Shown: piece by piece, positions 1,546-37,086 of the stretch
Layout: each line of letters opens with the position of its first letter
Numbering within the stretch: the first letter of the stretch is position 1
Program-made: the position numbers and the translations under genes
NCBI RefSeq assembly: GCF_006345805.1
Contig: NC_043006.1
Span: 57,164,001-57,228,000 of the forward strand
Direction of reading: 5' to 3'
Length of the DNA: 64,000 bases
Origin: Octopus sinensis
Lineage: Eukaryota
Notes under the pieces: model-generated
What the model saw: only the letters and a program-made list of their open reading frames with translations
What the model was told of the DNA's origin: nothing
Databases searched by the model: none

Positions 1546-3782
1546 ACCGGAGAATTACAGGAGGATGCAGCTAAAATGCCATGTGTATGAGACTGAATGT
1601 ATGCTTTGTGTAACTGAATAGACACAAATTTTTAAAGGGAGTGATAAGACAAATTCTTGTGGTTCTAAATTCAGGAAATCACAGATTCTAAACTGCATAA
1701 CTACAATTTTGTGTTCTAGTTTTAAGGGCAAGTGTGTATTGCCTTATTTTCAAAAGGAGCATCTGCTTGAATCAGTTCATGTACATATTACAGCTGTCCC
1801 ATTTCATGCCATATTTCTCTACTTTCTGTATAGTAATGTTTTATATTGATGCCCCAAACTGAAGGACATACAACTGCCCATTACTTCAATGTCCTGAACT
1901 GAATGCCAGTTATCTTCATGTCCTAAATTAAAGGATTTCTGAACCCCAATATCCATCTAGAACTGTGTTTTATGTCTAGGAAATGAAAAAAAAAAAGTAA
2001 AACTAAGTTTGATTTCAATTAATTATATCAATGGCTATTCAGTTTTCCACTATACATTTTTTTTAAAAATTGAATATTATTTATTTCCTGGAGAGCAGGG
2101 AGGTGTCTTACTGACAAACTATTGTTCCCAATCAGATCGATGGTAAGATTACATTTGATTAGTATTATCTTGATTTCTGTTCTTATTGGTCTTCTTCATT
2201 CTTTCTTGTCCAATATACAAAAAAAAAAAAAAAAACGCACACTGATCAGGTAGATCAGGCTTAATGTGTTCATTTAATTTTTGTGCAATATCAAAAGATG
2301 CTTTTACAGAATGGCAAAACAGAAAATAAATGGAATTGGTAGAGGGAGGGGTAACGAGCAATCCCTTACAATACTGTTCAACTGTTATTTTTAGCAGCAG
2401 TCATGTGCTAGCTCTGTCGGTCAGTTGCTTTTACAGTCAAAGAGTAATCTCGGCTTAAAACAAGATGTGAAAAAATAATTGAGAAACAAATTATTTTCCA
2501 GATTTGTTCATTTCCACATGAATAGTGAAACATTAGGAGCAAGAAACAATGGAGAGTTCGATAGTAGTGATGGATTTACAAAAAGGTGAAAATTTGGTAT
2601 TTTGAAGACAACTTTATTTACAGAATGATAATTTCAAATGTATAAAAAACATGACCGCTTAAAAAAAATAATGAAAAAGAAAAAAGTGGGGTAGGGGGAG
2701 TAAAAAAGATAACAGAAAAACAGCAATAATTTTTCTAGAAAGATATTTAACAAACTCGAATATCAAAGAATAACTATCATGGTTAAACCGAGCACTTTGT
2801 TCGGTTTAATAGTAACAGTTATTCTGAACTAATCTGAAACTTAGCTGACTCAAACAATTTTCAAGCTCCCAAGGTTAGGGATTTGTGTAGGTACGTTTCT
2901 TCCTAATGTAAAAAAAAAAAAAGAAAGAAAAAATGTGCTGAAATAATCTTTATTTTTCCACATCTTGTATGGGAGAACGAGCAAACTAAATTATTTATAT
3001 ATTTATAACTACTTATGGTTAGCGATTTTGAGGAAAAAGAAAAACACGATGTATGTGGGACTTGAACGAAAAGACGGTAGATATCAAACTACACAAATGG
3101 TCAAGCATGTGTCATGAAGAGATAGAGATGAGATACAGTAATAGTCATTTGTTTCTCAAAACAAAAGCACGTATAGTGATGTAAGTGAATCTGTACACAA
3201 GCGAAAGTGGATAGCAGATAAGGGTTAGTTAAAACAGAAATAAAAAGCTATGTCGGCAACAGTTGGTTTCGTTCTAAGATGGTTTATTGAGATTCATTTA
3301 TGGGGTGCATGCAAGGCAGTCGGGGATTTTCCAGAGAACGACAATACCTTTTAAACGACCAAACAACAAATCTTATATTTTTGCATCTCGTCCCACCAAC
3401 TTTTTACGGCAAAATTATAAAAGCAACATTTTTACATATATTCCATAGTAAATGCTGAGATAAATACATTCACGAGGAAGAAAAAAAAATGCTTGGTCAT
3501 TAGCCGAGCATTCAGTTTGTGCCCGTTTCCCTCCTCCTCGTTTAAATCGAGGTATTACATAGATATTTCATTTACAACCTATAGTAGACACTTGGACAGT
3601 GTTTGGTGTGAAATATAAAATGAAAGTCGTGCGAGAGACAAAACATCGTAAATGAAAAGCGAAATGAGAGGGTAAATAGTGCATTTTTATATACAATACG
3701 GTTCCATTTAATAGTCTTCAGTGAGTTTAAGTTGGCAGGACTGAATATGTATAGGCAGAACAAGAAACAACATTAAACATAC

Positions 3783-3839
3783 CTTGTATTTGTCAAAACC
3801 GGCAAGAATAGACGGTGTGAGACCGACTATATCAGCCAT
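3783..3839 (-). CDS. First coding exon of an unidentified host gene, copy 1 (MADIVGLTPSILAGFDKYK, phase-0 donor)
   Basis: Reverse complement reads ctatcaagATGGCTGAT...TACAAG|gtatgt: good ATG context, 19 open codons, canonical donor. A CCAAT box lies ~60 bp upstream, the surroundings are CpG-rich, and the exon is identical in a second copy. Confidence 0.65.
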
Positions 3840-3955
3840 CTTGATAGAGCAGACAATATTGTAATGCGAGCGTTTGATCGGTAGTATATGCTCTATTGAC
3901 CAATCAGAGACGTTGTTACAAAAGACAGTTGGGAATTATGTAAAGACGGATAGAG
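3840..3955 (-). promoter_or_regulatory. Core promoter/5' UTR, copy 1 (CCAAT box at 3900-3904; YY1-like AAGATGGC overlapping the ATG)
   Basis: GACCAATCAG (NF-Y type) and CAAGATGGCTG are present in a CpG-rich island, followed upstream by a GA-rich tract. Confidence 0.55.
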
Positions 3956-4394
3956 TGAGGCAGTGAATGGGATGGACGATATGAAGACAAAGAGGTGGAA
4001 GAGAAGGAAGCAGAGAGAGATTAAAAAAGAGATAGAGAGAAAACGAAAGGAGAGAAGAGAAACAAGGCATGAAAGAGAGACAGGGGGGCGATTAAAATCA
4101 GAAAAGAGAAGTGAAGCAGAGAGAGAGAGAGTAACGACGTATATGAAGAAATAAAAGAAAAAGAAATAAAAAGTGTGAGACAGATATTTAGTGAATGAAG
4201 CGAAGAAAGAACGAGATACGGCGGAAGTAAACAAAAACGTACAATGAAAGGTAGTGTGTGTGTTTATACACGCAAACAATTAGGGCCAATATAAAGATCC
4301 TCACCACTTAACGAAAACAAAAAAATAAATAAATAAAACCAGCTTACTGGGTGTTAACAACTGTGTAGAACTCGAATATGAAAAAAAAAAATGC

Positions 4395-5152
4395 GCAAAC
4401 GAACCGGGGGGATGGGGAGAGGATTTTTGGAAAATTCACGAGATCCGATTTTCCCTCATAACTTTCGGAAAATGGATATATATATTGATTTTTTTTTTTA
4501 CGGAATCTCACGTTTTCGGCTATGGAGAATCTGATTCTGAAAAAGAATTTGTTTGTAAAATTTCAATTTAAAAAAAGAAAAGAAAAGAAACCCTCCCCTC
4601 CCAATTCTACGGCCTTGGTCTTCGAGCAGGCTATTCACACGCTATGCTAGAAATAACTGCCAAATCTCACAAAACTGCGATAACATAATGAAAGAAATGT
4701 GTAATCAATCTACTCATCTTTCTGCAAAGATTTCTTTCAGAGTAATTTCCCGCAGTAATATAACAAAGTGATTCGTGTGAAATTAAAATGTTCATTTTTT
4801 TTTTTTTTTTTTGAAAGTTACAAAAAATATGAGTTGAAAAAAGAAAAGTAAAAATAGCAAAGAAATACTGTGACAAAGTGAAATCAAAGAGAATCATTTG
4901 ACCAGCGCAAAACATCGTGTGTTTCTGGAACAGAAAATGGTCTTGCCCATTTGAGAGTTGGGTGTTATTTCTAGCATGTGGATAACCTGCTTGAAGGCCA
5001 AGGCCGTAGAATTGGGAAGGTGTTGTGTTTTTGTTTGTTTGTTTTTTTTTTCAATATATATCCCTTTTCCTGAAAGTTATGAGGGGAAAATCGGATCTTG
5101 TGAATTTTCCGAAAGTCCTCTCCCCCACCCCATCCCCAGGGTCGTTTGGGCA
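4395..5152. repeat. Large imperfect inverted repeat (arms ~4395-4668 and ~4955-5152)
   Basis: GGAAAATTCAC.AGATCCGATTTT and CCCAATTCTACGGCCTTGG..TTC.AGCAGG occur on opposite strands. Confidence 0.85.
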
Positions 5153-5380
5153 AATTGTTTTTTCTTTATTTTATATATATATATATTCGTTTTCTACACA
5201 GTTGTTTATACCACACGCGCTTCCACCCCACCCCCCTAACGGGTGAGGATCTTTATATTGACCACAATTAGTGTTGGATAAAACAGAGATATGTTCTACA
5301 GTACATAACGAAATACTTGACACACCAATAATTTAATGTCCGATTTCATTGTAAAAAAAAAAAATATTAAATATGCAAAT

Positions 5381-5594
5381 TTACGTATCCAGTTTACTCG
5401 AATCAGTAATATACATGAGTTTATAAGTAATGCATTGGTTGATAGTTACAGGTGGTACACTGTTGCAGCGGGAAACTCCTAAGAGTCGAAACGAATTTAC
5501 AGCTGTTAGCCTTATCCCAACACCGCCCTTTTTTTCTCTGTCTGAACATATATTGTGCAGACGGAATTGTTTATAATCGTCATAACACAATTGG
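5381..5594 (-). CDS. Candidate terminal exon (QLCYDDYKQFRLHNICSD...SSKLDT*)
   Basis: Strong acceptor ttttttctcctttttag, ~70 open codons to TAA, retained CpGs, AATAAA ~210 bp downstream. It lies at the end of the CpG-depleted domain. Confidence 0.25.
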
Positions 5595-7738
5595 CTAAAA
5601 AGGAGAAAAAAAATCCATCCTCATCAGCAAAGGAATTCCAGTAGTCTGGAAAATAGTTGCATGAAAGATATTGTGAACGATTCCAGCTTATAAAATATAT
5701 TCCAATTGTTAGTATCACTGTAGCAATAATAATTATTATCCCAGTGAGGCATGGGGTTTTTGGGGGGCAGGGGGGAGTATAATTTACGAAGAGAAGAAAA
5801 GAAAATTTGTTAAAATCATCAAAAAGGTTTCATTTCATTTGAAGTTCATGAGAAAACAAATTTCTCAAGTGAGAAAAAGTAGTGTGAGTGTTAACCAAAT
5901 TATAATAATTTCAAAATTTAAAGAGTAACATATTTTTAGCCGTCTTTTCATGTTACTCGTAAAAATCCTTTCTGCTATATGGTTTATATCAATGAGTTTG
6001 TATTTCTCACAAAACCTATGGAAGATGGAAAAACAGAAACCAAAAACCATTATTTTCTATAAATCTTTCTGCACTGTATTTTTATAGTCATTGAATTTTA
6101 ATGTTGTGATTATCTCCCTTGTCATTTTTAACAAGAATTAGTCATTTGGAAAATTACTATTCTCATCACAATTTTAAAATATCTCACCTTACAACATCAA
6201 GTATGTTAGCAACAACTAAACTATTAAATCTATTTTACAGTTTCTTCAGCTACTATATAAAACAATAGAATTTAAAAACAATCAATAAAAAGGTGTATGG
6301 ACATGATAGAATATATCACAATGAGAGAGAGTGTAGCAAGGTAGTTGTCATTCCATCTTTATTCATATGGTATACCAATAGAAACATTATCTAATGTGTT
6401 AGCTTTTTTTTTTCCATTAAATATGTGAGGAGTGATTTGGTTGTTGTTTCTAATAGGTTGCACTCCAACATAGTGACTCCTCCACATAGTCATTGTGTTT
6501 ACCATTATGTTCAGCATGAAAATGAGACAGTGAGAACCATGATGGAAATATGTAACACTAATAAAGGGCCTCAGTTTTAGAGGGTAGAAGAAAATTTAAC
6601 TGAACCAATGTTTGCCTGGATCTCTCTTTTATTATTCAGCAGAAAGATGCATGTTAGAGGTGACTTCAGTAGAATTCAAATAAAGAAATATATCCAAATA
6701 ACAAAGGGCATTTTATTCACTTCTCTAAGGATTCTGTTAATCCAGCTCCTCTTCACAAAAGAAAAATGCCAAAAGCGAAGCTGCGAGAAAGAATAATGCA
6801 TTGTCTTAAGAGTGGAGCTATATTAAGCAAGTAAAGAACAAAGGCTTCCTTAAATATCAAAACTCTTCAAGATATGTGAAGTGTGATGCAAGTTTGGAAA
6901 GAAAAAAACCTTAGAAAACAAGAAAAAGTCAAAGTTTATAAGCAATGGTCGACTGACAGCGTTCCCTTCCCTCACCAGGAGGAAAAGGTCAGAAGTGGGA
7001 AATGAGAGGTAAAGAATGGCAATTGGATAAAGAGAGTATAGTACAAATATTTGACCCAATAAAAGCCAGTTTTAAATGTATGTGTGCATCTAGTTATAAT
7101 AAAAACTATTTTACATTAATCTGATGGGTTACTCTATACTTTTGTAGAGTACAAATTTATATTCTTAAATGAGAATATTTTTGGCAGTGATTTTGAAGTT
7201 TCAACCAGTTAAGCCATGATCAGAGGGTGATGTATTAGAGTTAGTCTTATATATTTTTGTTCCCATTTTTATACATAAATATATACACACCTATATGAGC
7301 TTCACTTTAGCATATATCTCAAACAGAATTGAACAAACACCAATCAAACTCTGCCTCCACAAACAGGAAGGTTAAAATCCCTATATACTAATCAAATTGC
7401 TTATAGAACAATGCTAAAGAGAAACATAAACATACAACCTTTACTCAAATACTTTTGTGAACATCAAAGCACAAGAGAAACAACTTTCAATACTAACAAA
7501 GTTATGACGTGCCTGAATAATCACCCCCAACCTTACAAATGAAAACAAGAAATTTCCTAAATGTCAACAAGACCTGATTAGCCTAAATTTACCACCTACA
7601 TACTTTTGAAAAATAAGTTGACACACCCAATTACTAAGGGATTAAATACTGGACTTTGTACCTTTGGCCCTTGTATTGTCACAACAAATTATTAAATCCA
7701 CCAAAATCAGTAAAAATACTGTCATACCTCATGCTTAC

Positions 7739-7794
7739 CTAACAAAAGAGAAACAACATATGTGTTTATGAAGTTCAACATGCATTGATAAATT
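7739..7794 (-). CDS. Candidate 56-nt internal exon
   Basis: Acceptor gttattgtttag, donor TTAG|gtaagc, two open frames. No homology recognised. Confidence 0.2.
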
Positions 7795-8634
7795 CTAAAC
7801 AATAACATAACCCCAAATTTAATCAAAATGTTTCCAAAACACTTTTCCATAATAAACCATGAAAACTTTAATTACCACCCCACTCAAACCTACACACCCA
7901 AAGATGATTTTAGCTCAATATAGACTATATAAAGACAAAACTAACACTAATGCATTGCAGTGTGATGATGGTTTAGCTGGCCAAAACTTCAGAGTTACTC
8001 TTAACATTCTTGTTTAAGAATAATAAGTGTGTGATCTTTGCCTTGAGGAAATGTATAACATAATTACTTCTAAATTGATATTATTGAATTGTAAAAGTAA
8101 TTTTAGAATGAAATGTTCTCATAAATATAGAACATTTAAATATTTCAATACTAAATAACCCATCAATTATGATTGCTTTTCCTACAAACTGATAGGCATA
8201 ATTTTCCTAAAACATTTTTTAGCATATTTAATTGATAACTAATTGTCAGGACGTAGGATTTCTATGTTCCTATTCATTCATTACATACTGTCGTCATCAA
8301 AAGTTAAATATTAAACTGGCTTTGCTTAGAATATTATATTTCTTCTTCACATTTATTTTTGCATGCATTCATCTATTACAGATATTTTCTTAATTCACTT
8401 TTAACTTAAACTATTTTGAATTGCTTTGATAATATTGTGTTTGCATTTATTTTCAGATATGCTAATTTATAGTAATTTTATACCAGTCAAATTAATACAC
8501 CTTTTTCTGCATCTAAATATTTGACACAACAGAAATGATAGTTGGTAATGTATGGTGCAATCATCAATTAAAGATGTGATTTTCTCCTTTCTTATTTTTG
8601 TTGTCTTATACTCTGAATTTCTTGAAATTATTAA

Positions 8635-9930: not shown

Positions 9931-9939
9931 CACATGCGC

Positions 9940-9970
<31 letters not shown>

Positions 9971-10874
9971 CACACATACACACACACACACACACTGTTT
10001 CCCAGAGGATATTAACACACATTACTGATAGCATATATAATAATAATACTACAGTTGGATCCAAAGAAAAGATATCTAATGATGGCATGACAGTACTAAT
10101 GATGGTTATTTCATATGTAATTACATTGCTACAGATTCTGGAAGATATAGTCAATTGTAATATTTAATATAGGACTGTTGCTTGATCAAACATGAAAAGA
10201 TGAAAGGCAAAGTTAACTATGGTGAGATTCAAGTTTGGAACATAAAGGCAGAAGGCCATTATGAAACTTAGATGGAAGAGGACAGAGTACATAGTACTTG
10301 ACTCTCTCTCTTTTTTACTCTTTTACTTGTTTCAGTCATTTGACTGCGGCCATGCTGGAGCACTGCCTTTAATCGAGCAACTCGACCCCGCGACTTATTC
10401 TTTTGTAAGCCCAGTTAAGTACTGGGCTTAAGTACTTCTATCGGTATCTTTTGCTGAACCGCTAAGTAATGGGGACATAAACACACGAGGCTATAGTAGA
10501 AGACACTTGCCCAAGGTGCCACGCAGTGGGACTGAACCCGGAACCATGTGGTTGGTAAACAAGCTACTTACCACACAGCCACTCCTGCCTGGTAACTTAC
10601 CTGACTGGTAACTTTGTCTTATAAACACAGATGAGATTGAAACAGAGATCATAAATGGTCATAACTAAATTAGCACATGACCAATTTTGCCAATCTACTG
10701 CCCTTCCTTCATTCATTTTTACATCAGATTTTTTCTGATAGCATGGGTTAGACAAATATGATGTTGAGGCATTGTTTTACAAATAGATATTCTTCCTGAT
10801 ACTAATCTTCAGTTGTTTTGTATTCCACATGGCTTAAGAAGTACAAGGCAAAGGAACTGTTTATTGACAGAGGT

Positions 10875-11019: not shown

Positions 11020-11069
<50 letters not shown>

Positions 11070-11270: not shown

Positions 11271-12108
11271 AAAAGAAAGAGAGAGGTACCAACAACAATG
11301 CCATCCGATTATGATTTTCATATAAGAAAGCACAGATGTAAAACAGAAGCACAATTTTACACACACACACACACACACACAATGGGTTTCTTTTTAATTT
11401 CCATCTGCCAAATTCACCCAGGGCTACAGTTGAATATACCTGCCTCAGGTGCCATACAGTAAGATTCAACCTGAAACCACATGGTTGAGAAATGATACAA
11501 CCATACCTGTAACTATTCATTTATGTTAACAAAGGCAAGAACTGAAGATAGACATTACTAAACAACTGAACAATAGTATCATAACTTCAGTGAAGCTTTT
11601 TTTTTTAACAGGTATACATATTCACAAACATACATACTCAGTAATAACCTGAAGTCAAAACACAAAGTTTTAAAACTAAAAGCTATTCCTTAGATAACTA
11701 ATATTCTTTTCTACTCTAGGCATAAGGCCCGAAATTTTGGGGGAGGGAGCCAGTTGATTACATCAATCCCAGTACACAACTGGTACTTAATTTATCGACC
11801 CCGAAAGGATGAAAAGTAAAGTCGACCTCAGCGGAATTTGAACTCAGAACTTAAAGACAGATGAAATACCGCTAAGCATTTCGCCCGGCATGCTAACGTT
11901 TCTGCCAGCTCACAAAATAACCAATATTAAAATATTGACTCGAATCAACAGTCAATATAAATAGACAATATTATGCTATTTCCATTATAGTATGATATTT
12001 TATATCACACTACAATATTATACTATTTCTATTCAGACAGTAAGGTGAATAGTTAAGTTAGTGTTAACGTTGTTAATGTAGCTGAAAAGCAAAAATCCAG
12101 TTAAAAAG

Positions 12109-12490
12109 TACAAATATGGGCTGAAAAGTTCATAGAGTGACTCTGAAGGAGTGATGGAATCTTGCATGCATTCATTTCAGCTCTCTTATATATAACATCA
12201 CTTCTTTCCAGGTAAACTGACACCTGACTGTTCAAAGAAGACTTCAAAAGTAACTAGTAGCAACTTCTCTTGAAAATGGACAAAATATGGCATCATAGTG
12301 TTATCAAGTACCAGCGGGAAAAGGGTTTGGCCCCCAAGGACATTCATGCTGACATGCCATTTTTATCAACAGTGCAAAAGTGGGTAGCTGAATTTAGGAG
12401 GGGAAGGGAGAGTTTTACAGATGATCCAAGATCTGGACGACCTGCAGCTTCCACCACCGAGGATAGCAATGAATGTGTTCACCTCATATT
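12109..12490 (+). mobile_element. Mariner transposase N-terminal remnant
   Basis: MDKIWHHSVIKY...STVQKWVAEFRRGRESFTDDPRSGRP, preceded by TIR-like GGCTGAAAAGTTCATAG. Confidence 0.85.
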
Positions 12491-13946
12491 TGATGAAGAA
12501 ATACTGGAGGTATGGTTCAGTCTTGATAATTAACAAGTCTTATGATATTGGACATAAGTGGCTGTGTGGTAAGTAGCTTGCTTACCAACCACATGGTCCT
12601 GGGTTCAGACCCACTGCGTGGCACCTTGGGCAAGTGTCTTCTACTACAGCCTCGGGCTGACCAAAGCCTTGTGAGTGGATTTGGTAGACGGAAACTGGAA
12701 AAAGCCCATCATGTGTGTGTGTGTGTTTATGTCCCCGTAACTTAGTAAAAGAGACCGATAGAATAAGTACTAGGCTTACAAAGAACATGTCCTGGGGTCG
12801 ATTTGCTAGACTAAAGGCGGTGCTCCAGCATGGCCACAGTCAAATGACTGTAACAAGTAAAAGAGTAAAGAGAGTGATTTAAGAAAATTATCACTGATGT
12901 TAGTCACTGAAGGAGTAATATGAATAATCCTATTAGGTAGGGTAGATAAGAGTGTAAATCAGGAAACCTAATCAAGCAATGATCAACCTGAGACACTATA
13001 TTCAAGAATGGTGTGATTTTTTATGTAAGTCAGTTTATTGTGACTTTTGAACTCTAAACAATGAACATGATTTTAAAAAAATCTCTAGAGCTTCCCCTTT
13101 TAGTAAGATATTTTTGCTCATTAGACTTGTCATTAGTAAGTTATGAATTATTGAAGTGTATTTAAGAGTACATCAACACACATATGTGGGTGATATACTG
13201 ACACATATGAGTCACTAATGGGTTTTAAAATAATTTCACAGTCATCAATTTTTTTTATTTAAAAAAATTTTTTTTTAGATGATTTAAAACTGTAGAATGG
13301 TGCACAGAAACATCTTCAAATTTAAATGAACAATATCCAGTCCATAATTTCTTAGTTTTGAAACTACATCACACATTATAAATTGTAAATACATTATATC
13401 AATTTTCAGTCTGTAACATGAATCAGCTAATTATGTAAAATTAAATATTTGCACAGTCAGTACTTTGGGAAGTACCCTCTACTGTAGCCCTGGGCCAACC
13501 AAAGCCTTATGAGTAGATTTAGTAGACAGAAACCTACAGCAGCTCATTATTTATATATATATATATATATATAGTATAGTATAGTGTTCAGTGAAGGAAA
13601 GGCCACAAAAAAAGTAATCCGTTTGGTGTATTTAATGAATATAGTATAAATTTTTATAAGTTACTAATAGTTTCATATGATGAAAACAACATGGACAGAA
13701 TTTTATAACACATCTGGTGCCTTCATGCAATTTTCAGGCAGTGCTCGCATGGCGTGTGTGTGCATGTGTGCCTGTGCATGTGTCCTTCCACTGCTTGGCA
13801 ATCAATGTTGGTTTGTTTACATCCTTTTAACTTAGCAGTTCAGCAAAAGAACGCGATAGAATAAGTAACAGACTTAAAAAGGGGTAAGTACTAGTTGCAA
13901 TTTGTTTGACTAAAACCCTTCAAGGTGTTGTCCCAACATGACTGAA

Positions 13947-15790: not shown

Positions 15791-18738
15791 CAAGACACAT
15801 CTGCTTGTCCGTGGAATTAAATCCCCTCTCCACCTGCTCAAATATGCCCTCATTTAGTCAAGGGCAGGGCTTTCCTTTTTCCCCTTTTCCTCTCCTTTCC
15901 TGTTATGCAAGTTACTTGGCAATCTCACTTGTGCTAGTGGCATCAAAAGAGCACCCATTACACACTGTAAAGTAGTTGTCATTAGGAAGGGTATCCAACC
16001 ATAGAACCTGTGTCTAAGCTGACATGGAGCATGATACAGTCCCGTGGCTCAGTGGATCCTATCAAACCATCGAACCCATGCTAACATGGAAAACAGACAT
16101 TAAATAATACTGATGATGTTACAAGAACGTTTTTGAAAGTCTTCATGCTTTGTTAAACAATAACAGCTGCCAAACTAACTGTTAATACTTTCATGTTTGA
16201 AATAAATGTCATGTGATAGAGAAGACAACAGCTTCCTGTATCATCAAGTTTGTTTATTGCAATTACTCTTATGCAGCTAATGAAAAAAATACAAAGCAAT
16301 ATATCTGAAGACAATATATCAGTATTACTATCACCAAATGCTCAGTTAGTTGATAGGCAGCAAGTCAACTGCACAGATAGCAAAACTATTTTGTTTCAAA
16401 CTAAGAACCCACATACAGTTCACTATAGTATTTTAAAGACTGCACATACATTTGGTCATAACAAAAAATATATTGAGCTCAGTTATAATAAAATAAACTA
16501 AGAGATATCAAAAATATTATTGGAATATGAATACAATAGAAACAATAGAAATATTCTCCTTAATAACATTTGTATTACTAAAAACACCATATTTGTAATG
16601 AGGCTGGTGGTTTTATTCATCTTACAGATTGCATGTCCGAAAAACTGATTTGATGGTAAAGAGAATGATTAGTTGACATCAGTATCACTATCCTTTATAT
16701 ATGTTTCTCTACTCAAGTTAGCACATCTGCCTGGAAGGCTGTATTTCAACTTGGAATAATGAAAAAACAAGAACTTCATTTTGGTTTGCCAGTTGAGGAG
16801 ATCAAGCCATATGCTTGACCACATAAGACTTCAGTGTTGATCATGAAATTAGCAAAAATGTTTTATGATTTAAAGATGTTATTTATACAAACATCTTCCA
16901 AATTACTTCCTAGTTAAGCTCAAAGTCGAATCAATCAGTATTTAACCTAGATGAAAAGATCCTTACTCCACATAATATAGAAAATGAATTTAAATTAATA
17001 ATAGTCTTATAGCAAACCCTATAGAATATCTTAATATCTCTGTTTTGCTATGTAAGTCTCAAGAATTAATATAAATAAAAAAAATAAGATTGAAGATAAA
17101 ATCAATAACTGAGGAAGCATTTGGAAATTAGTTTTGAAAATATGTTTTGAAGCTGTCTTATTGAAGAAATATCTAATGGCAGGTCCTAAATATTATCATC
17201 TGCCATTTTTCACACAGAACCATATGAAATGAGATATAGTTGTAATATATCAAAATCTAAAGAATGAAGTTGTTTTAATTCATCAGATGTAAACAAACAT
17301 ATGAAATACATCAGCAGTTAGACATGCACACACATGCACGCACACACACACACACACACACACTGTTTATCTTTTACTTGTTTCAGTCATTAGACTTCAG
17401 GCCTTGAAAAATATTAGTCAAATGAACCAATCCCAGTACTTATTCTATCAATCTCTTTTGCCAAACTGCTAAGTTACAGGGATGTAAACACAAAAAACAC
17501 TAGTTGTCAAGCAGTGGTGGGGGAATAGACACAAACACACGCACACATGATGGGCTTCTTTTAGTTTCTTATCAACAAAATCTACTCACAAGGCTTTGGT
17601 CAGCCAAAGGTGCCATGCAGTAGTGGTATGAACCCACAACCATGTGGTTGTGAAGCAAATTTCTTACCACACAGCCACTCCCACACCTATAATACACACA
17701 CCCACAAACATTCTCACCTACATATTTTTACTTGTTTCAGTCATTTGACTGCAGCCATGCTGGAGCACAACCTTGAAGGGTTTTAGTCAAATTGACCCCA
17801 GGGGTTATTTTTTAAGCTTTGTTCTACAGGTCTTCTTTGCCGAACCACAAAGTTACAGTGATGTAAACACATTAATACCAGTTGTCAAGCAGTGATGCGA
17901 GGACAAACACAGACACAAAGACACACATACACACATGTGTGTGTGTGTCTGTGTGTGTGAGTGCGTGCATGTATTTGACAGGCTTCTTTCAGTTTCTGTC
18001 TACTAAATCCACTTACAAGGATTTGGTTGCCCTAAGGCTATAGTAGAAGACACTTGCCCAAGGTGCCATGCAGTGGGACTGAACCCAGAACCCTGTGGTT
18101 AAGGAGCAAGATTCTTACCACACAGGCTTCTTTCAGTTTCCATCTAGGAAATCCACTCATAAGGCTTTGGTCAGCCCAAGGCTATAGCCGAAGACACTTG
18201 CCCAAAATGCCATGCAGTAGTGGTATGAACCCGCAAACATGTGGTTGGGAAGCAAATTACTTACCACAGAGCTACTCTTGCACCTATATACGCACAGCTA
18301 TATATACACGCCTATATATATAAAACACACACACACACACACACACACACATCTGCACACATGCCAACATGGAAAAAAGGCATATTAAATAATTATGATG
18401 ATGATAATGATGTCCTTAAAATAAAATAATTTTAAAAAAAAACTTTACAAAAGTTTCTTCTGAATGTCTCCAACCCCTCTAGTATTTAATAACATAAAAA
18501 GTCAGATTTATTATTTTTGTTTTTTTTTCTGAACTACAATAATACAAAGAAAATTTAAGAAAAAAATGCATTGTCATTACGGTAAAGTTAAGAATATTAG
18601 TAATATTAGTAGCATAATTAAAGTATCACTCATGAAATACCCAAAACAATAAGTAAAAGTAGGAAAATAGAACATGTATGTTGTAAACTTCAGAAGTGTA
18701 GAGTGTTCACTATACAAAAATACAAATCTGAGATTTAA

Positions 18739-23102: not shown

Positions 23103-23170
<68 letters not shown>

Positions 23171-26100: not shown

Positions 26101-26428
26101 TGCCCTAACATTCTTGCTCTTAATGATCTCTAACCTCGTATTTTTCATTAGCTTGGCTTCATCAGCAGTTTGTGTTTTTATTAGATTTCGAAAGTTGTGT
26201 GTCATGATAATAAGAGAAGCCGACACAGGAAGCTAGATAGAAAATTAGCATCATCTTTACAATAACGATGATTGTTTTTCTGAGTTTTAAATCAAGATAA
26301 CATCGATACAAGAATTGATCTCATCACATTTTTGAGAGAGAATTACTTTAAATCTGTGAATTTGCCATTTGCTATGCTTATAGTGTTTGTATGTGAGACA
26401 AGGTTAGACATATGGTAATATATGGTTG

Positions 26429-26660
26429 AGGCGGCAAGCTGGCAGAAACGTTAGCACGCCGGGCGAAATGCATAGCCATATTTTGTCTGCCGTTACGTTC
26501 TGAGTTCAAATTCCACCGGGTTCGACTTTGCCTTTCATCCTTTTGGGGTCGATAAATTAAGTACCAGTTACGCACTGGGGTCAATATAATCGACTTAATC
26601 TGTTTGTCTGTCCTTGTTTGTCCCCTCTGTGTTTAGCCCCTTGTGGATAGTAAAGAAATA
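26429..26660 (+). mobile_element. tRNA-derived SINE family A (Meta/MESC-like domain)
   Basis: A box GGC..GCTGGCAGAA, B box GAGTTCAAATTCC, central GCCTTTCATCCTTT.GGGGTCGATAAA..AAGTACCAG. Other copies at ~11705-11915(-), 37570-37790(+), 50866-51150(+), 51885-52320(-), 53295-53670(-). Confidence 0.9.
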
Positions 26661-28391
26661 AATATATGGTTGAGAGCAAAGGGAAAATGAGAGAGAGAAG
26701 ACAGGGGGATAATTCAGTGGTGACAAGAGGCATTGACAAGGAGGGAAAAAGAAGAGGATGAAAGAGAGAGAGGGATAGGCTCAGAGAATGTGAGAAGGGA
26801 AATAAGTAGAAGGAAAGAGATAGCAGAGAAAAGACAGGAATGACAGGATGAAAAAGAGATGAAAATAAAATAGAAGTGAAACATGGAAAACAGACAAAAG
26901 CAATAGAGAGAGAAGGGTAGAGAAACAAGGCTGGAAACATCATAGAAAAATGGGAGCAGCAGTGGTAGGAGCGATAGTCCATTAACCCAAGACTATAGGG
27001 TTAAAATTCAACCAATGAAAATTGGTAATACCAGAATATTAGATGAACTCTAAAAGGTGTTATATTCTGTCTTTTGGCAAAAACATTTTTGTACCAAATT
27101 AAGAGAAAGTATTTATTTAGTCCGTCAGGAGTTAAAGTTTCAAGCAGAATGACCACACTAGACTTGATAGCAGGACAATAGCTCAACAGCAGTATGAAGG
27201 TCCACCCTGTACAACTGATGAACAGCCAGCTAGATAGCTATTTTAGGTGCTAATACTACCAAGATCAACTTCCAGATCAATAAGAGGAAATAAATGCAGC
27301 ATATTGGAACAGGTGATGAACAACTAGACTAATTGATACCATGAGTCATAACCAAACATTTACTCAATTACCTCCATGTTAAAAGGAGGTACTCATACAA
27401 CAATATCTGCGACAAACCTAAGAGAACCTCAATTTAGCTGTTCAACTTGCTGAAAATAGCAGCTAAAGCTCCCTAAAAAAAAATACACTATCATTTATAT
27501 AAGTAGAATACATTGGATAACACTGTTCTAGATATACAAAAAAAAAAAAAAAACAGGACAGTAACAGATGGAATTATCATAGATTTATTGACCAGAACTC
27601 GAGGTGAAATGGCAAGGCATCACTGTCCCTGTCACTTAGCTAACCCCTGCTTAAGCAGATCAAATGGTGTTAAAATGTTTGCTATTCATATTTATTTGAT
27701 TCTAACAAAAAGGTGTAACATTATAGATTATTAGGATATTAGGTGTTGAGTGGAGTGACGATTTCTCTCCCATCACTGGTACAATGTTCATAAATAAGCA
27801 CAGCACTTGACTCTCAATGGACTTGTCTATCTGAAAGTAGGACAATTATAGCTAACTACCATTAGCAGCAAGGGCACTGTATTTATAGAGCTGAATTAAC
27901 AGTTAACTTTAGATTTAAATAATAGAACAGTCAATCACTGCAGTTTTCTCACTGAAAATACTGTAAATGAAGCAGATAGAGAATCAGTATGTGTTGGATA
28001 CAAGTTGGTGAATATTTTAAACAATAGACACGATGGGGGTTTCATAAGCAACCAAATACTTTATAAGTAGTTATTTCATCAACCACTGAGAAAAACTACA
28101 ATAGCAAATGTCTCCTGGGGCTAAATTACAGCAACATTCGTCCTAAACCAGGACTGCCATGTTATGTTGGCAAAAATATTTACTCCAAAGTACTGTTGCT
28201 GAATATCTCTCGTCGTGAGATTTTAAAAAATAGTAATTTTCTAATGTTTACAATATGGTGAAAATAAGTCCCATAACTCATTTAGTAACAGTGTAATACT
28301 AAAGTATTCAATTAAATAAAGAGTATCTATAGAAAAATTGGCTTGATGGTTCCTATCTTTCTCCACGAAGTTCGGGAAGCATGTGGTTTAA

Positions 28392-29818: not shown

Positions 29819-29974
29819 ATGAAAAGACACAACTTAGAAATATAGTTTTCATAATAGTCTATCAATGTTATAGGATCAACCTTCACTCCTTAATTTCAAT
29901 AGATAAATTTAGCAGCAGAAACTTATAACCACCACCATTAATGTCTAACATTTTTCTTTACTGTCATAATTGGA

Positions 29975-30208
29975 GAAGGTCAGTTTGACAGCGGAGCATA
30001 CTGGCTTCATTCCTTGCAAGCTTACACATGTTCTCAGCAATCACGGCCCATGTTTCACTGGTACATAGCATAGCTGTTCACACACGTGTCATACAGTACA
30101 CCTTTTACTCTAAGCAAGAGGCCCTTTGTCATCAGCAGAAGTAGGAGCTCTCTGAATTTTGCCCAGGCTATCCTTACTCTAGCAGCTACACTTTCAGAGC
30201 ATCCACCC

Positions 30209-30210
<2 letters not shown>
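29975..30210 (-). mobile_element. RTE-clade LINE RT fragment
   Basis: GGCSESVAARVRIAWAKFREL...RVKGVLYDTCV...SETWAV. Confidence 0.85.
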
Positions 30211-30266
<56 letters not shown>

Positions 30267-31439
30267 CGAACTTCTCTCTTTAGTTTCCATCTATCAAATC
30301 TACTCACAAGGCTTTGGTCAGCCCGAGGCTATAGTAGAAGGCACTTGCCCAACATGTCATGCAATGGTACTGAACTAGGAATCATGTGGTTGGGAAGCAA
30401 ACTTCTTATCACACAGCCACAACTGTTGTTTATGAATCAATTAATTGCAACCATCACTGCCTGTACAAAGGAGATGTAATTATGTTACAACTATCAAAGA
30501 ATGTCAACAAAAAAAAAACCCAAAAAACTGGAGGATACTTCAGAAGAGATAAACAGAAAAATTAAAATGCGAATATTAAATCTGATGGTTATTGCAATCC
30601 AATAAAGTGACAAAAAATAGAATCTGTAAACTACCAGGGAAAATTAGTTTTAGTGTTTAGTCGCATCCCTTTACATTCATCATCATAATTTAACATCCAG
30701 GTTCCCTGCAGGTATAGGCTGGATGGTTTGGTAGGACCTGGCAAGTGCAAGGACTGCATTGTACTCCAGTATCTTCTTTGGTATCATTTCTATGGTCAGA
30801 TGCCCTTTCTAATGTCAACCACTATATAGTGGATACTGTGGTGCTTTTTTTTCCCCATCAGCACCCGTGGGGTTGCTGTGCAGCTTATGAGACTATAAAC
30901 CACAAGGCAGGTCCTTATACAAAGAGATGAGAGGTTAAAGTTTAAGAGAAGAGAGCAGAGCAGGTTTCTTGTTGTAGAGGAGAGGGCTACTCAGATTTAG
31001 ACAAGAGAGAGACAACAATTAGTTGGAGCTGCAAAGAGAAGAAGCCTTCACCAGTAAACTTTCCCTTGCAAGACGTACATAAAATGAGATATATTTGATT
31101 ATATTCTCCTCTATAATTTGTGGTCAAGTGCCAATTTCAAAATAGATATTCAAATATCCCACTTTTCTGTTTGTTAGAATGATTTTTCCAAAAAAGGAAA
31201 TGGTAGCTGTATGCTGAAAAAGAAGATATTGATTATTTAGCCCTAGGCAGCCCTGATTTGGTAGATCTCTGATCAATTGTAGCTAGACTATCAGTTTTTA
31301 TCTATGTATAGTGTACCCCAGATTACATTAACCAATATGTCCTTTATTTCAGTAGCATGTGGTTTGAGGAACATTCAGCTACTGTTTCTAACAAAATAAG
31401 TGACTACATTGACTTGATTTTCATCAAATAAAAAAGATT

Positions 31440-32560
31440 TGTATCAGCCCGGTCTAGTAGAAGGGTCTGTACGCATATCTTTCACTGGCCCCCTAAGACC
31501 AGACACTCATGTTGGTAATATTCCTCTTAAATGTTTGCAAATAGATGACTGCAAATAAAGTATGTGCAGGGAAGGAGTTCTGGGGAGGTAGTTAGAGAGC
31601 CCTTAATGGAGAGTGAGGCTTTTAAATGGTTTAGATAATGAAAGGGAGAGAAGCAAATTGGGGGTGCATAAGTGGAGGTAGCAGATTTGGAATGCATAAG
31701 TGAGACCAGTTGTCCAGCTCTCAAAATCAGAGACTATAGTAATATTGGCAAAGGTAGCATGTCAAATCCAGAAGTGTGTGTAGCATCTGCAGACCTAGTT
31801 ACAAGAATAGTGCTCCATTTCAAAAGTTGAGCTTTGTAGACGATTAATAGCTGTTAAGGATCTGAAATATTTTCTGGTGTTGAAGTTTTGTAATACAGTG
31901 TTTGTTATGTCAAGGCTGTGTGTTCACCAGAAGAGATCCTCACTGATGGTGAGGTCTAGCATTCATAGCAAATTTGAGGTTTCTAGTTGCATGCTGCTTG
32001 AATTTGGGGTGGTGGGGAATAAAGTTTTATCAATGTGTGTAGTGATTTTTATATTTGTATTGTCGAAGGAGATTTATGAATTCTCCGTTTATGAAGCCAG
32101 TACAGGTTTGGTATGGGGAGTGTTGATAATGCTTAAAATTAGGTTAGGGAGGAATGAAAGGTGCTATCATCAGTGTAGAAGTGTGCATTGTTAGAAGTGA
32201 CAGAAAGTAGATTGCTAACATACAGGAGAAATTGTGTGAAGGACAAAACTGAACCCTGAGGTCACATCAAAGTTGACAGAATACAGGCCACAGAGAGCTC
32301 AACATATGCCATAATAGTTGAAATGACAGAGAGTCAGCAACACAAGAAGTAGAACAGTTTTGCTAGCAGATTTGCATGCTAGCCAGGTTTAAAAGTTTTA
32401 ATACTGCTGAAGGTAACAATACTACTTTCACTAAATTTATTAAGTGTGGATCTCTACAGGTAACATATAAGAGTAGGACACTGGAACATTTGATGTTACA
32501 AAAGATATACTGGTGGTCATTAAAAAGGAAATGAGATTCAATGTAATGAAGGGAGTTATT
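31440..32560 (-). mobile_element. Degenerate CR1/Jockey-group LINE RT fragment
   Basis: PQGSVL, FLLYV and YTDD motifs, downstream TISEDLFW and QLLIVYKAQ-like segments, many stops. Confidence 0.7.
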
Positions 32561-32664
32561 CTTAATGGCTGTCACAATCCCCTTTGAAATGTAGGAAGTG
32601 AATGTGATAGGACAGTAGTTAGAAGGGTCTAAGATGTTTCCCTTTTAGGAAAACATGGACTCAC

Positions 32665-32891
32665 TGCATCTTGTTTTCAAAAAGATTACTATAACTGAAG
32701 ATGATTATGAAGAGCTGGGAACTTAATAATAGGTGGAATATCCAAACTAATATATATTCAAAGCAAATATAATGTAGTGGCTTTTGCTTCAGATCAGACA
32801 CTCGAGCAAGAAAGAAGCAAAAAAAAAATGAGGTATAAAAAGCGCCCACACATAAAATTTTATATGCAAAAATGTCGCTAAAGATCTGAAG
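32665..32891 (-). CDS. Candidate internal exon (75 open, hydrophobic codons)
   Basis: Acceptor ttttcctttttgttag, donor GCA|gtgagt, open in the frame continuing exon 1. T-rich intron DNA can give such ORFs by chance. Confidence 0.25.
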
Positions 32892-33814
32892 CTAACAAAA
32901 AGGAAAAACAAATGGAGAAATGGTCAGAGACATCAAATATCACAAGTTTCAACTAAGACTACCCTTTTCCCATGTATATATGCAAGTAAATATCAATGTA
33001 CATGCATAGACACATGTTAGCAAATGACCACTGACTTCCAAGTTCATTCAATCTTTGACAGGTTTTAAAAATTACTGAATTCCCCAAAGCAGAGTTGGTG
33101 GAGTTGCTGGATTAGTCACCAACAACTTGGTCACAAGAAACTTGAAATATATATCAGGTCACTGACATTATAAAAGTTAAAAGTAATTAGTAAGTTAATG
33201 GTAAGACCTAATATAGATGAAGCATTAGTAAATGAATGCTTCATGTTTGTACAAAAAATATTTTATCAGTTTCAAGATTAGTTTAAGATTGTAACAACAA
33301 CAAATTTAGATAAGTTACAACACCCGGTGTCATGTTTTATTGTTCTTGGTTCAACTTGAATTAAGGTCAATAAAATAGGCATCAATAACAGCAAAGACAG
33401 AACATGTCATTGATATATACACTCCCATTGTAGACTAATTTACAAGTATATTAGCTTGAAAACACTGGTTCTTATCCAATCAGCGAAGTTAAGCAATGCA
33501 TCACTGCTATGATCAATGCACTTAAATGAATAATCAATTGGGAAACATTAGCTGCCTTATATATATATCTTTAGTTTTCTAACAACAGGTGAGCTCACCT
33601 GGTTAAGAATTCTCAATCAGGACATCCCAAATTTGTTTCTACTTGCCCAAGATGAATAACATAGCTTCAGGTTGAACCCAAGCCTTATGAGTAGGCGAGA
33701 CAGAAAATGTTTGGAAGCCTGCTGGTTTGACTGTCCCTTATAATTCAACAGACCAGCCTTGTCATACAAACACATTGATTCTCCTTGATAATTAGGTTAG
33801 GAGTGTATATCATC

Positions 33815-34010
33815 ATCATTGTTTAACATCCATTGTCCATGCTGGCATGGGTTGGACAGTTTGACCAGGGCTGGTAAGCTGAGGGGCTGCAACAGACTCC
33901 AGTCTGATTTGGAATGGTTTCTACAGCTGGATGCTCTTCCTAACGCCAACCACTCCAAGAGAGTAATGGGTGCTTTTTCATGCCACCGGCATGGGTGCCA
34001 GTTGCATGAC
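33815..34010 (-). mobile_element. Repeat ending CCAACCCATGCCAGCATGGA..(GAT)n, probably an RTE 3' UTR or RTE-dependent SINE
   Basis: Homologous copies at ~15900-16115(+) and 30680-30890(-). Confidence 0.65.
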
Positions 34011-34189
34011 ACCAGTATGTGCCACATCTACGATTTCACTTGGTTTGATGGGTCTTCTTCACAAGCACAGCATATTGCCAAAGGTCGCCATCATTTGTCA
34101 TTGCTGCCATATGTTTGTGGATATTAAGGACAAAAAGGATTTTGACACAAAATTACAAGTTGAATATTTAAGTGTTTATTTATATATAG

Positions 34190-34575
34190 GCGTAGGAATG
34201 GCTGTGTAGTAAGTAGCTTGCTTACCAACCACATGGTTCCAGGTTCAGTCCCACTGTGTGGCACCTTGGGCAAGTGTCTTCTACTATAGCCTCAGGCTGA
34301 CCAAAGCCTTGTGAGTGGATTTGGTAGACGGAAGCTGAAAGAAGCCCATCGTATATATGTATGTGTGTGTATATGTTTGTATGTCTGTGTTTGTCCCAAC
34401 ATCGCTTGACAACCAATGCTGATGTGCTTACGTCCCCGTAACTTAGCGGTTCAGCAAAAGAGACCGATAGAATAAGTACTAGGCTTACAAAGAATAAGTC
34501 CTGGGGTCGATTTGCTCGACTAAAGGCGGTGCTCCAGCATGGCCACAGTCAAATGACTGAAACAAGTAAAAGAGT
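34190..34575 (+). mobile_element. SINE family B, full length
   Basis: Complete head, central domain, (TG)n and tail. Confidence 0.9.
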
Positions 34576-34945
34576 ATATCTGTTTATAGCCCTTATTCTA
34601 ACCTAAAGCTGTAGATAAATATGAAACTCCTATGAAAAACAGGTTCTCAGATATGAAAATTGCAATTAACTGCTGACTCTTACCTAAGTTTAACAACAAA
34701 AATTTAGGGACTAGATTTTATTAACACAAAGGATTATTCTTATGTTCTTTTACTTGTTTCAGTCATTTGACTGTGGCCATGCTGGAGCCCCACCTTCAGT
34801 TGAACAAATCAACCCCAGGACTTATTCTTTGTAAGCCTAGTGCTTATTCTATCAGCGTGTAAACACACCAACGCCGGTTGTCAGATGGTGATGGAGAGAC
34901 AGATAGACACAAAGATACACACACACACGTGTGTGTGTGTGTGAA

Positions 34946-35260
34946 GGCGCGTGGCTTAGTGGTTAGGGCTATTCTGCTAACGATTGATAGGTCGTGAGTT
35001 CGATTACCGGCGACGCGTTGTGTCCTTGAGCAAAACACAATTTCACGTTGCTCCAGTCCACTCAGCTAGCAAAAATGAGTAATAGCAGTATTTCAAAAGG
35101 GCCAGCCTTGTCACACCCTGTGTCGTACTGTATCTCCCCGAGAACTACGTGAAGGGTATACGTGTCTGTAGAATGCTCAGCCACTTGCACGTTAATTTCA
35201 CGAGCAAACTTTCATTGATCGTATCAGCTGGGACCCTCGTCGTCGTAATTGACGGAGTGC
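34946..35260 (+). mobile_element. tRNA-derived SINE family C (head C, tail 1)
   Basis: GGCGCGTGGCTTAGTGGTTAG...GTGTCCTTGAGCAA head, inserted in the microsatellite of a family-B SINE. Confidence 0.85.
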
Positions 35261-35271
35261 TCCTATCCTAA

Positions 35272-35307
<36 letters not shown>

Positions 35308-36913
35308 GACCGCTCTTCTTTCACTTTCCGTCAACGAAATCCAGCCCGAGGGTACAGTAGAAGACACTTGACCAGGTTGTCACGCACTGGGACTGAACCC
35401 GGAACCATGCGGTTGGCTAGCAAGTTTCTTACCACACAGTCACATTGTATCAGTTTTCCTTTGAGATCGTTAACTTTCGCCCAATCTTCCCTAGTTCATG
35501 AGAAAGAGACACTGTAAGTAAACCCCTCTCCGAGTCAAACGTATCATGGACAGAAAGAGAAAAGAATTGCTACCACCCAATACTTAACAGGTACTTTACT
35601 GAATTTGGAAGGATGAAAGGCAAGGTGACCTAACCGGGATTTAAACTCCAAGCACAGCCAATGGATATCGTGAGGCAATTCTTGTCGACACTCCTCCAAC
35701 ACTTCGACCAATCCGCCGCCTTATTTATTTCCTCTTGCCATTCATAATCATTTTCTCTTCCTTTCGAAGTATTCATTTCAATTATACTTTACCGCTCCGA
35801 GAGGTCTCTTTCTCTATTGTTGTTTGTGTAGCCTAGGTTCAGTTATGATGGAGCAAGCTTAGAGAGATGGTATGGTGAAATAGGAAGGAAATTTCTCTAT
35901 CTGTAACAGTTTCAACGTCCAGGTTAAGGAATCATTCGTTATGTTCCTTTCCTTGGCATGTAAAAAGGGACTAAAAGAGTCCAACTAGGTTATGAAATTA
36001 CCTCTATTTTATTGTAACTTGCATGGTTGAACGAGAGAACTAAATGGTGCATTTATTACAATATGGTTAGCGATTCTGGACATAGATATCAAACTACAAG
36101 AAACAAAGTATTTAGCTCGGTGCTCTCCTACGCCTGACACCCATCTGACGGTCAGATATGTGTTATAAAGGGATAGAGAGATGAGATCTAGAAATAGCCA
36201 CGTTTTTTTTTTCCTCAAAACAATACATGTATAGCGATGTAAGTGAATCGGTACTCAAAGAAGTGAAACTGGACAGTAGACAAGGGTTAGCTAAAACAGA
36301 AATAATAGGCTATGTCGGCAACAGTTGGTTTTCGTTCTAAGATGGTATATTAAGATTCCTTTAAGGGGCGCACGTAGACAGTCAGGGATTTTCCAGAGAA
36401 CAACGACGACAATATACATCCTGAATAGAAAAGAAACCTTCTAAACGACCAAACAACAAATCTTATACTTTTGTATCTCGTCCCACAAACCTTTTGCGGC
36501 AAAATTATAAAAGCAACAGAGTGGTTGTATATTGTCAACATAACGTGACAGTCCCGTAAGGGAATTACATCACCGCTATTTAGCCCTAGGAAGTATCGAC
36601 GCTTCCTGTATTCACGAGGAAGAAAAAAATGCTTGGTCATTAGCCGAGCATTCGGTTTGTGCCCGTTTCCCTCCTCCTCGTTTAAATCGAGGTATTACAT
36701 AGATATTTCATTTACAACCTATAGTAGACACTTGGACAGTGTTTGGTGTGAAATATAAAATGAAAGTCGTGCGAGACAAAACATCGTAAGCGAAAGGAGA
36801 GGGTAAATAGTGCATTTTTATATACAACACGGTTACATTTAATAGTCTTCAGTGAGTTTAAGTTGGCAGGACTGAATATGTATAGGCAGAACAAGAAACA
36901 ACATTAAACATAC

Positions 36914-36970
36914 CTTGTATTTGTCAAAACCGGCAAGAATAGACGGTGTGAGACCGACTATATCAGCCAT
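36914..36970 (-). CDS. First coding exon of an unidentified host gene, copy 2 (identical to 3783-3839)
   Basis: Same ATG, same 57 nt and same GTATGT donor as copy 1. A long CpG-depleted domain starts ~2 kb downstream. Confidence 0.65.
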
Positions 36971-37086
36971 CTTGATAGAGCAGACAATATTGTAATGCGA
37001 GCGTTTGATCGGTAGTATATGCTCTATTGACCAATCAGAGACGTTGTTACAAAAGACAGTTGGGAATTATGTAAAGACGGATAGAG
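36971..37086 (-). promoter_or_regulatory. Core promoter/5' UTR, copy 2 (CCAAT at 37031-37035)
   Basis: Identical to 3840-3955. Confidence 0.55.

Follow-up and report, generated by a model that had tools for sequence, protein, structure and literature searches.

A directly duplicated block with promoter-like motifs and a putative first exon in a CpG-depleted domain of the Octopus sinensis genome

Results

A 0.95-kb block occurs twice in direct orientation

We analysed a 64,000-nt stretch of Octopus sinensis DNA (assembly GCF_006345805.1, contig NC_043006.1, positions 57,164,001–57,228,000; hereafter the window), in which a promoter-like segment followed by a putative 19-codon first coding exon occurs twice on the minus strand, 33 kb apart. 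All coordinates are window positions; the downstream copy is termed copy A and the upstream copy, copy B. A preliminary description of this DNA had reported twin minus-strand stretches at 3783–3955 and 36914–37086 (173 bp), and these proved to be identical base for base, the number of such pairs expected by chance being 0. Degenerate back-translation of the 19 codons, with up to three mismatches allowed, matched exactly two sites in the window and none in 100 dinucleotide-preserving shuffles. The 173-bp twin lies in the middle of a longer direct duplication, approximately 0.95 kb in extent, delimited by gapped blastn and global alignment of the two copies to each other:

3099–3955, minus strand: copy A of the block (downstream)
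36150–37086, minus strand: copy B of the block (upstream)

In the gapped alignment the homology formed a single collinear block (3099–4037 versus 36150–37157), accompanied by a weak collinear tail of 71% identity (2939–3027 versus 35993–36075). On neither side do the flanks of the two copies resemble each other, homology being absent even at 65–70% identity; the shared sequence ends approximately 0.7 kb into the putative intron. Self-BLAST of the whole window revealed the A/B block as the only pair at depth 1.0. It also agreed with blastn (word size 9) and tblastx, neither of which found a duplicated downstream exon in the window, as the preliminary description had maintained.

Other duplication models were tried and rejected. 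Diverged further copies of the first exon were not found in the window at any stringency, which disposed of an array of diverged first exons. Repeat spacings of 33.8–35.5 kb had hinted at an old, large-scale tandem duplication, but the pairs behind them proved to be multi-copy short interspersed nuclear elements (SINEs) at depth 4–8, and the offset histogram had no peak.

Tiered identity suggests gene conversion

Global alignment in gene orientation, expressed in copy A coordinates, resolved the block into tiers of different identity:

A 3705–3955, B 36836–37086, minus strand: 100% tier, 251 of 251 positions identical
A 3467–3704, minus strand: second tier, 222 of 227 positions identical, with three small indels (7, 2 and 2 bp)
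3468–3955, minus strand: near-identical core of copy A, 488 bp, approximately 99% identity (4 substitutions and 3 small indels), a putative gene-conversion tract
36610–37086, minus strand: near-identical core of copy B
A 3418–3467 (approximately 49 bp), B 36508–36609 (approximately 100 bp), minus strand: non-homologous indel island at which the core ends
A 3099–3417, B 36150–36507, minus strand: older diverged tier, 238 of 277 positions identical over 3140–3417 (approximately 86%; Jukes–Cantor K = 0.156)
3956–4200, minus strand: CT-rich minisatellite directly upstream of copy A, from 3955 (37086 in copy B), where identity to the other copy drops to background (48%)
37087–37215, minus strand: the counterpart minisatellite upstream of copy B

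Beyond the diverged tier, identity between the copies is again at background. The core is far more similar than the paralogous DNA around it (473 of 478 versus 238 of 277 identical in the next tier; Fisher p = 2.6e-13), with sharp steps at the indel island and at the minisatellite, and within the core the 100% run differs from the 97.8% run (p = 0.024). Beyond the 100% run, the copies first differ at 3704 and 3697 (36835 and 36828 in copy B), and the 7-bp indel lies at 3652–3658. The 100% run spans the promoter-like part and the entire 43-codon open reading frame (ORF) that results from reading through the donor-like site described below, including its stop codon (3708–3710). Because this near-identical tract has a sharp heterology step on each side and lies on a background that is approximately 15% diverged, the identity step points to non-allelic gene conversion acting on an older duplication. 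Purifying selection on nearly every base of the 488 bp is a less likely alternative and is itself compatible with conversion. The minisatellite upstream of both copies is a fast-evolving segment: upstream of copy B (37067–37196) a 48-bp stretch within it is tandemly duplicated, whereas copy A has no such duplication upstream, indicating fast turnover. In the diverged tier only 5 of 14 CpG sites are conserved versus 75% of the other dinucleotides, consistent with faster CpG decay outside the core, and the losses there are alike in both copies (seven sites are CpG only in B and four only in A).

The tiers also bear on whether the block is a mobile element or an artefact, be it an old pair of long terminal repeats (LTRs) of a large retrotransposon derivative, an interspersed family, a pair of small-RNA genes or a false assembly duplication. 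Direct repeats of approximately 1 kb lying 33 kb apart would suit such an origin, as would the promoters that LTRs carry and a hairpin with a T-run near the end of the core, but we consider it very improbable in any of these forms. An LTR pair of one retroelement was rejected, as no gag, protease, reverse transcriptase, RNase H or integrase remnant was found between the copies on either strand and divergence between A and B is strongly non-uniform; the block ends are too diffuse for TG…CA termini or a target-site duplication to be recognised. Real SINE families in the window have depth 4–8, whereas the block has depth 1, and public assemblies contained no relative of an ORF read from the block in any frame. 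A gene transcribed by RNA polymerase III or of the small nuclear RNA type, ending at the hairpin and T-run, was likewise rejected: no Rfam family was recognised even at E ≤ 10, the fold is ordinary (z-score −1.05), and the shared sequence continues past the T-run to 3468. Across the whole window Rfam gave no match at the gathering score and only noise on both copies at E ≤ 10, and no tRNAs were found. Nor is the pair an assembler-made duplicate, because the window contains no Ns and the flanking tiers are 14% diverged and rich in indels.

Each copy carries promoter-like motifs and a putative first exon

Direct reading of the sequence bore out the motif positions (CCAAT, YY1-like, ATG exon and GTATGT) that the preliminary description had assigned in both copies:

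A 3900–3907, B 37031–37038, minus strand: Y-box/CCAAT motif CTGATTGG (plus strand CCAATCAG)
A 3835–3843, B 36966–36974, minus strand: YY1-like motif CAAGATGGC, overlapping the ATG
A 3783–3839, B 36914–36970 (identical), minus strand: putative first coding exon, 19 codons from ATG to AAG, MADIVGLTPSILAGFDKYK
A 3777–3782, B 36908–36913, minus strand: GTATGT following AAG, a candidate splice donor in phase 0

We take CTGATTGG to be a CCAAT/Y-box from general knowledge of NF-Y sites, and both it and the YY1-like element are predicted motifs. The ATG has an A at −3 and a G at +4, and AAG/GTATGT is near the donor consensus. Purine–any base–pyrimidine (RNY) periodicity is 0.42 in the 19 codons versus approximately 0.17 in the 24 read-through codons; with n = 19 the sample is too small for proof, and the periodicity lends slight support to the first-exon coding reading, leaving the status of the 19 codons as a coding exon unproven. 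Approximately 0.6 kb upstream of copy B lies a 131-codon open frame (37706–38098, minus strand) with many runs of His and Asp (CAT/CAC repeats) and no Pfam match, which is probably low-complexity sequence and not a gene.

CpG retention marks both copies within a depleted domain

The CpG observed/expected ratio (o/e) of the whole window is 0.58, with a GpC control of 0.99. Regional values, computed with in-window repeats masked, revealed two islands of CpG retention on either side of a strongly depleted interval, and the profile was unchanged without masking:

1–3098: CpG o/e 0.36
Copy A: CpG o/e 0.96
4201–36149: CpG o/e 0.26
Copy B: CpG o/e 1.06
37216–64000: CpG o/e 0.73
2751–5500, no strand: CpG-retaining island around copy A, o/e approximately 0.8–1.7 (250-bp and 1–2-kb bins)
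35001–39500, no strand: CpG-retaining island around copy B, o/e mostly 0.6–1.4
6001–34000, minus strand: CpG-depleted interval, T-rich on the minus strand, masked o/e 0.08–0.46 per 2-kb bin and 0.26 overall, possibly a methylated gene body or long intron
1–2750, minus strand: CpG-depleted DNA downstream of copy A that runs off the window, o/e 0.00–0.49 in the 250-bp bins of 1501–2750

From A to B, successive bins have CpG o/e values of 0.45, 0.33, 0.22, 0.13, 0.15, 0.18, 0.22 and 0.40, and beside the A island, at 6001–6750, the ratio is 0.00. The deamination products TpG and CpA are raised where CpG is low (o/e 1.27 versus 1.01–1.17), and the best single CpG change point lies at 34–35 kb (log-likelihood ratio (LLR) 92.6). 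The putative start is near the middle of each island, and both islands reach well past the approximately 0.95 kb of copied DNA into unique flanks; that around A extends approximately 1.5 kb upstream and 0.7 kb downstream of the converted tract. Because they extend into unique, non-homologous flanks, the islands are a regional state and are not carried by the duplicated sequence. Within the A island, approximately 320 bp upstream of copy A, we also observed a foldback of approximately 1 kb (4278–5269) with nested collinear arms at approximately 4278–4669 and 4952–5269 that are 77–90% complementary; nothing comparable lies upstream of copy B.

The methylated CpGs of Octopus bimaculoides cluster in the introns and exons of a subset of genes, intergenic DNA and transposons being comparatively unmethylated (PMC9476566). 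Approximately 9,000 of its genes combine a methylated body with an unmethylated transcription start site and promoter, and the methylated genes are highly and constitutively expressed (PMC9476566). The depleted interval (0.26) and retained putative starts (approximately 1.0) of the present window correspond to that arrangement as a footprint of CpG loss, and the contrast between the domains (0.26 versus 0.73) suggests mosaic methylation of the gene-body type, which is all that the footprint argument requires. The window's composition and load of repeats suit a cephalopod.

The islands also speak to the possibility that one promoter is live and the other a passenger, that is, an orphan 5′ end or a dead copy whose intact appearance would be due to recent conversion. 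The 488-bp core would have been converted recently, so the intact motifs and CpGs of the recipient say little about its function, and only copy B coincides with domain boundaries. A passenger copy A would, however, have to account for an island that runs far into unique DNA on both sides of the tract, and the similar CpG losses outside the core do not single out a decaying copy; we therefore judge a passenger copy improbable.

AT skew changes sign at copy B

With repeats and microsatellites masked, AT skew of the plus strand is +0.066 ± 0.007 (A > T) over 1–37 kb and −0.030 ± 0.010 (T > A) to the right of it, and the boundary falls at the upstream copy:

37000–38500, no strand: AT-skew change point coinciding with copy B, best points 37.0–39.0 kb, LLR 34.9

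This LLR was reached by 3 of 1,000 bin permutations. A T-rich strand is the usual sign of the sense strand in introns. With the minus strand rich in T as far as copy B, the skew fits minus-strand transcription of the DNA left of that copy, and this putative sense-strand skew persists right up to the copy A island. To the right, across 38000–50000, AT skew is negative (T > A on the plus strand), reaching −0.21 at 46–48 kb, and CpG is mildly depleted. Divergent transcription of the plus strand out of the B island could explain this pattern, but so could the base composition of relics of retroelements, such as the minus-strand open frames at 46985–48920, which have no Pfam match.

One gene with twin promoter/first-exon modules is the preferred reading

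The two independent footprints, CpG and AT skew, point the same way: most likely, the window holds a transcription unit on the minus strand, at least 37 kb long, that would start at copy B, pass through copy A and leave the window. We favour, at a probability of roughly 0.45, a single gene with twin promoter/first-exon modules in which the upstream module would read through a 33-kb intron that holds its twin. We favour it because only a 5′ end is duplicated and because the 28 kb between the islands bears a gene-body footprint with no recognisable exon. The duplication, its tiers, its uniqueness in the window and the CpG and AT-skew domains are direct observations; promoter activity, use of the ATG and donor, read-through from B to A, and conversion as the mechanism are what we infer from these sequence features.

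In this model, a direct duplication of approximately 0.95 kb would have copied the 5′ end of a gene, comprising a TATA-less core promoter of the CCAAT/YY1 type, the 57-nt first coding exon and approximately 0.7 kb of intron 1. Non-allelic gene conversion would later have re-homogenised the central 488 bp, its tract bounded by the unstable CT-rich minisatellite on one side and by the indel on the other. Both copies would be promoter islands unmethylated in the germline. Copy B, near 37.0 kb, would be the start of the minus-strand unit of at least 37 kb, which would cross a 33-kb intron filled with transposon relics, then copy A, near 3.9 kb, and then the left edge of the window. Whichever copy initiated them, transcripts would be spliced through AAG/GTATGT to one common exon 2 lying left of position 1, so that two starts would yield a single N-terminus.

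The preliminary description had left open two alternatives, twin first exons of one gene or tandem paralogs. In the second, two genes would point the same way: the body of gene B would fill part of 6–36 kb, copy A would drive another gene leftward, and conversion would keep their 5′ ends alike. Direct orientation with tiered identity is typical of concerted evolution, the body of gene B would account for the CpG-depleted interval, and the lack of an unmethylated spacer between the genes is no obstacle, as octopus methylation can run past the transcript end (PMC9476566). Against this, the homology covers approximately 0.95 kb and not a whole unit, stopping approximately 0.7 kb into the intron between flanks that are unrelated even at low identity, with the caveat that the body of a copy A gene would lie off the window. 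Moreover, no coding segment that Pfam recognises or that is open for more than 150 codons lies between the copies on either strand, and the sense-strand AT skew is continuous up to the copy A island. We thus consider tandem genes rather unlikely, and the one-gene alternative fits the footprints better.

Evidence against a promoter and first exon

Several observations weigh against one gene with twin modules. Each motif is by itself common by chance. A pyrimidine-rich AAG/ATG site abuts the ATG and the 57 nt of the exon are a multiple of three, so that an internal-exon reading is possible, given this acceptor-like site and length. No candidate for exon 2 was found in the 3.7 kb downstream (left) of copy A. 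The 43-amino-acid (aa) product of the read-through ORF had no three 5-mers in common with any of 5.8 billion protein clusters, and a search of PDB with the peptide gave only a chance-level ankyrin-like resemblance (E = 1.1). GC skew showed no companion asymmetry of the kind seen in mammalian transcription units. The overlap of the foldback with the A island could add to the CpG contrast, as could the more recent repeats and higher GC of the right-hand domain, and the transfer of the O. bimaculoides methylome to this window is an assumption.

Further searches for coding relatives gave the same outcome. A six-frame composite of the whole block matched nothing among the protein clusters at E ≤ 0.01, exact ORF look-up found no gene on record with the MADIVGLTPSILAGFDKYK read-through product, a degenerate DNA pattern found no metagenome contig able to encode the peptide, and the peptide had no Pfam match at E ≤ 10. 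The protein-search negatives are weak, because the collection covers the source organism poorly: a fragment of a long interspersed nuclear element (LINE; 52175–52873) used as a calibration query retrieved only two close relatives (93% and 76%), all others being at approximately 55%. Two guesses at the identity of the peptide were discarded. An ankyrin-like motif, D-x-x-G-x-TP-x-x-LA, reached only E = 1.1 against PDB and had no Ank repeat downstream, and an arginine-kinase-like N-terminus found no exons in the window when an approximate sequence was used in tblastn.

A possible exon 2 at 445–813, where three frames are open, was also rejected, as it lacks codon periodicity and a usable phase-0 acceptor, its sole acceptor-like site being followed by a stop after six codons. 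When all open segments were searched against Pfam, with minimum lengths of 32 aa for the minus strand (1–37 kb) and 40 aa for the plus strand (4–36 kb), the only hits were relics of transposase-type helix–turn–helix (HTH) domains, namely HTH_48 (E = 8.4e-7) and, below threshold, HTH_32. No host-gene domain was found by Pfam downstream of either copy, and open segments between the copies reach 150 codons at most. The window contains no other duplicated or recognisable coding segment. The earlier interpretation as promoter and first exon thus stands in part: the CpG islands and strand-bias domain fit it, whereas the peptide is an orphan and no exon 2 was found.

The same results define an alternative in which the block is neither promoter nor first exon but a low-copy segment (a regulatory element, an internal cassette exon or neutral DNA) in or at the edge of a long gene, with incidental motifs and a neutrally converted core. 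The orphan peptide, motifs that were found post hoc and are individually expected by chance, a 43-codon ORF that is not unusual in 0.5 kb, the acceptor-like site before an ORF segment divisible by three and the fast CpG decay in the diverged tier all suit this possibility. It leaves unexplained why both copies are central to multi-kilobase CpG-retaining islands that exceed the copied DNA, and an inert block would hardly account for the coincidence of copy B with the CpG and AT-skew domain boundaries. We regard this alternative as unlikely.

Other repeats and relics in the window

A tandem repeat at 40836–42467 comprises three copies, up to 100% identical, of a unit of approximately 536–543 bp. 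Microsatellites of the type (TATG)n/(CATG)n lie on either side, at approximately 40672–40830 and 42367–42540, and an inverted partial copy, 93–96% complementary, lies 15 kb away at 57024–57439. A SINE-like family with a unit of approximately 190–210 bp occurs at 45467–46250, 11700–11911, 47215–47369, 51888–52328 and 53328–53676 and, inverted, at 26426–26670 and 61736–62166. It includes a head-to-tail cluster of four with a spacing of 184–197 bp, and its copies are probably young because they are CpG-rich. Two short interspersed families, each with 85–93% identity between copies, were also found, one at 10441–10582, 17988–18269, 30279–30420, 35347–35443, 56643–56784 and 58871–59008, and the other at 12549–12815, 34189–34576 and 62941–63313.

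The LINE fragment used for calibration is a relic of a reverse transcriptase C-terminus (52175–52873, plus strand; 233 open codons; Pfam zf-RVT, E = 4.4e-6). Its closest relatives are on a contig of run SRR7158634 (93%) and in the unannotated, fragmentary assembly GCA_024449705.1 (76%), and the others, at approximately 55%, are from corals and echinoderms. Transposase HTH relics lie at approximately 9.5–9.7 kb (minus strand), 12261–12530 (plus strand) and 55068–55481 (minus strand); the families represented are HTH_48 of Mos1/mariner (E = 8.4e-7) and, below threshold, HTH_32 and HTH_23.

Discussion

Clustered protocadherins and UGT1A use alternative first exons, each with its own promoter, that are spliced to shared downstream exons. 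The present locus resembles them in having tandem, same-orientation first exons, putative as they are, with promoter-like sequence before and a donor after each, such that the upstream unit would read through the downstream one. Both copies have CCAAT/YY1-like motifs and each sits in its own CpG-retaining island. Unlike protocadherins and UGT1A, there are only two units here and they are identical, so they would add no protein diversity; the exon has 19 codons and is not a large variable exon, no diverged further copies occur, and the shared exons would be off the window.

The human G-gamma and A-gamma globin genes are a classic case of concerted evolution by conversion, with a tract that ends at simple-sequence repeats. 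Like them, the octopus block has a near-identical central tract within more diverged paralogous sequence and a step at a simple repeat or indel. Whole genes are duplicated at the globin locus, whereas only approximately 0.95 kb of a 5′ end is shared here, without any duplicated gene body in the window. Partial duplications of gene 5′ ends, which yield orphan or extra promoters, are similar in that only promoter, exon 1 and proximal intron would have been copied. Whereas relics of such duplications tend to decay, the core here is kept identical and the CpG content of each copy is still of the unmethylated type. The locus also resembles octopus genes of 'methylation pattern 2' (PMC9476566) in its CpG-depleted body, CpG-retaining islands at putative starts and motifs of the housekeeping type. 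It differs from them (PMC9476566) in having two islands in one domain, and what is read here is a footprint of CpG loss and not methylation itself.

We tentatively picture, at somewhat less than even odds, a broadly expressed gene in which two identical modules 33 kb apart undergo recurrent conversion and supply the same protein from two separately regulatable starts. Less likely still is a variant in which the unspliced 43-codon ORF, wholly within the 100% run, would be a duplicated micropeptide gene. Because the first 251 bp are identical, cap analysis of gene expression (CAGE) tags and exon-1 RNA-seq reads could not be assigned to one copy. Each ingredient is known; their combination, if confirmed, would be modestly novel. 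As a point of method, fossils of CpG depletion and AT skew located a probable transcription unit, its direction and two candidate starts in an unannotated window. If the one-gene reading is true, the locus would be a clean natural promoter duplication within a single gene, with one start nested in the first intron of the other and the two kept identical by conversion. It would then be useful for studying the sharing or partitioning of expression between duplicated promoters, and the means by which an internal promoter remains active and free of methylation under read-through transcription.

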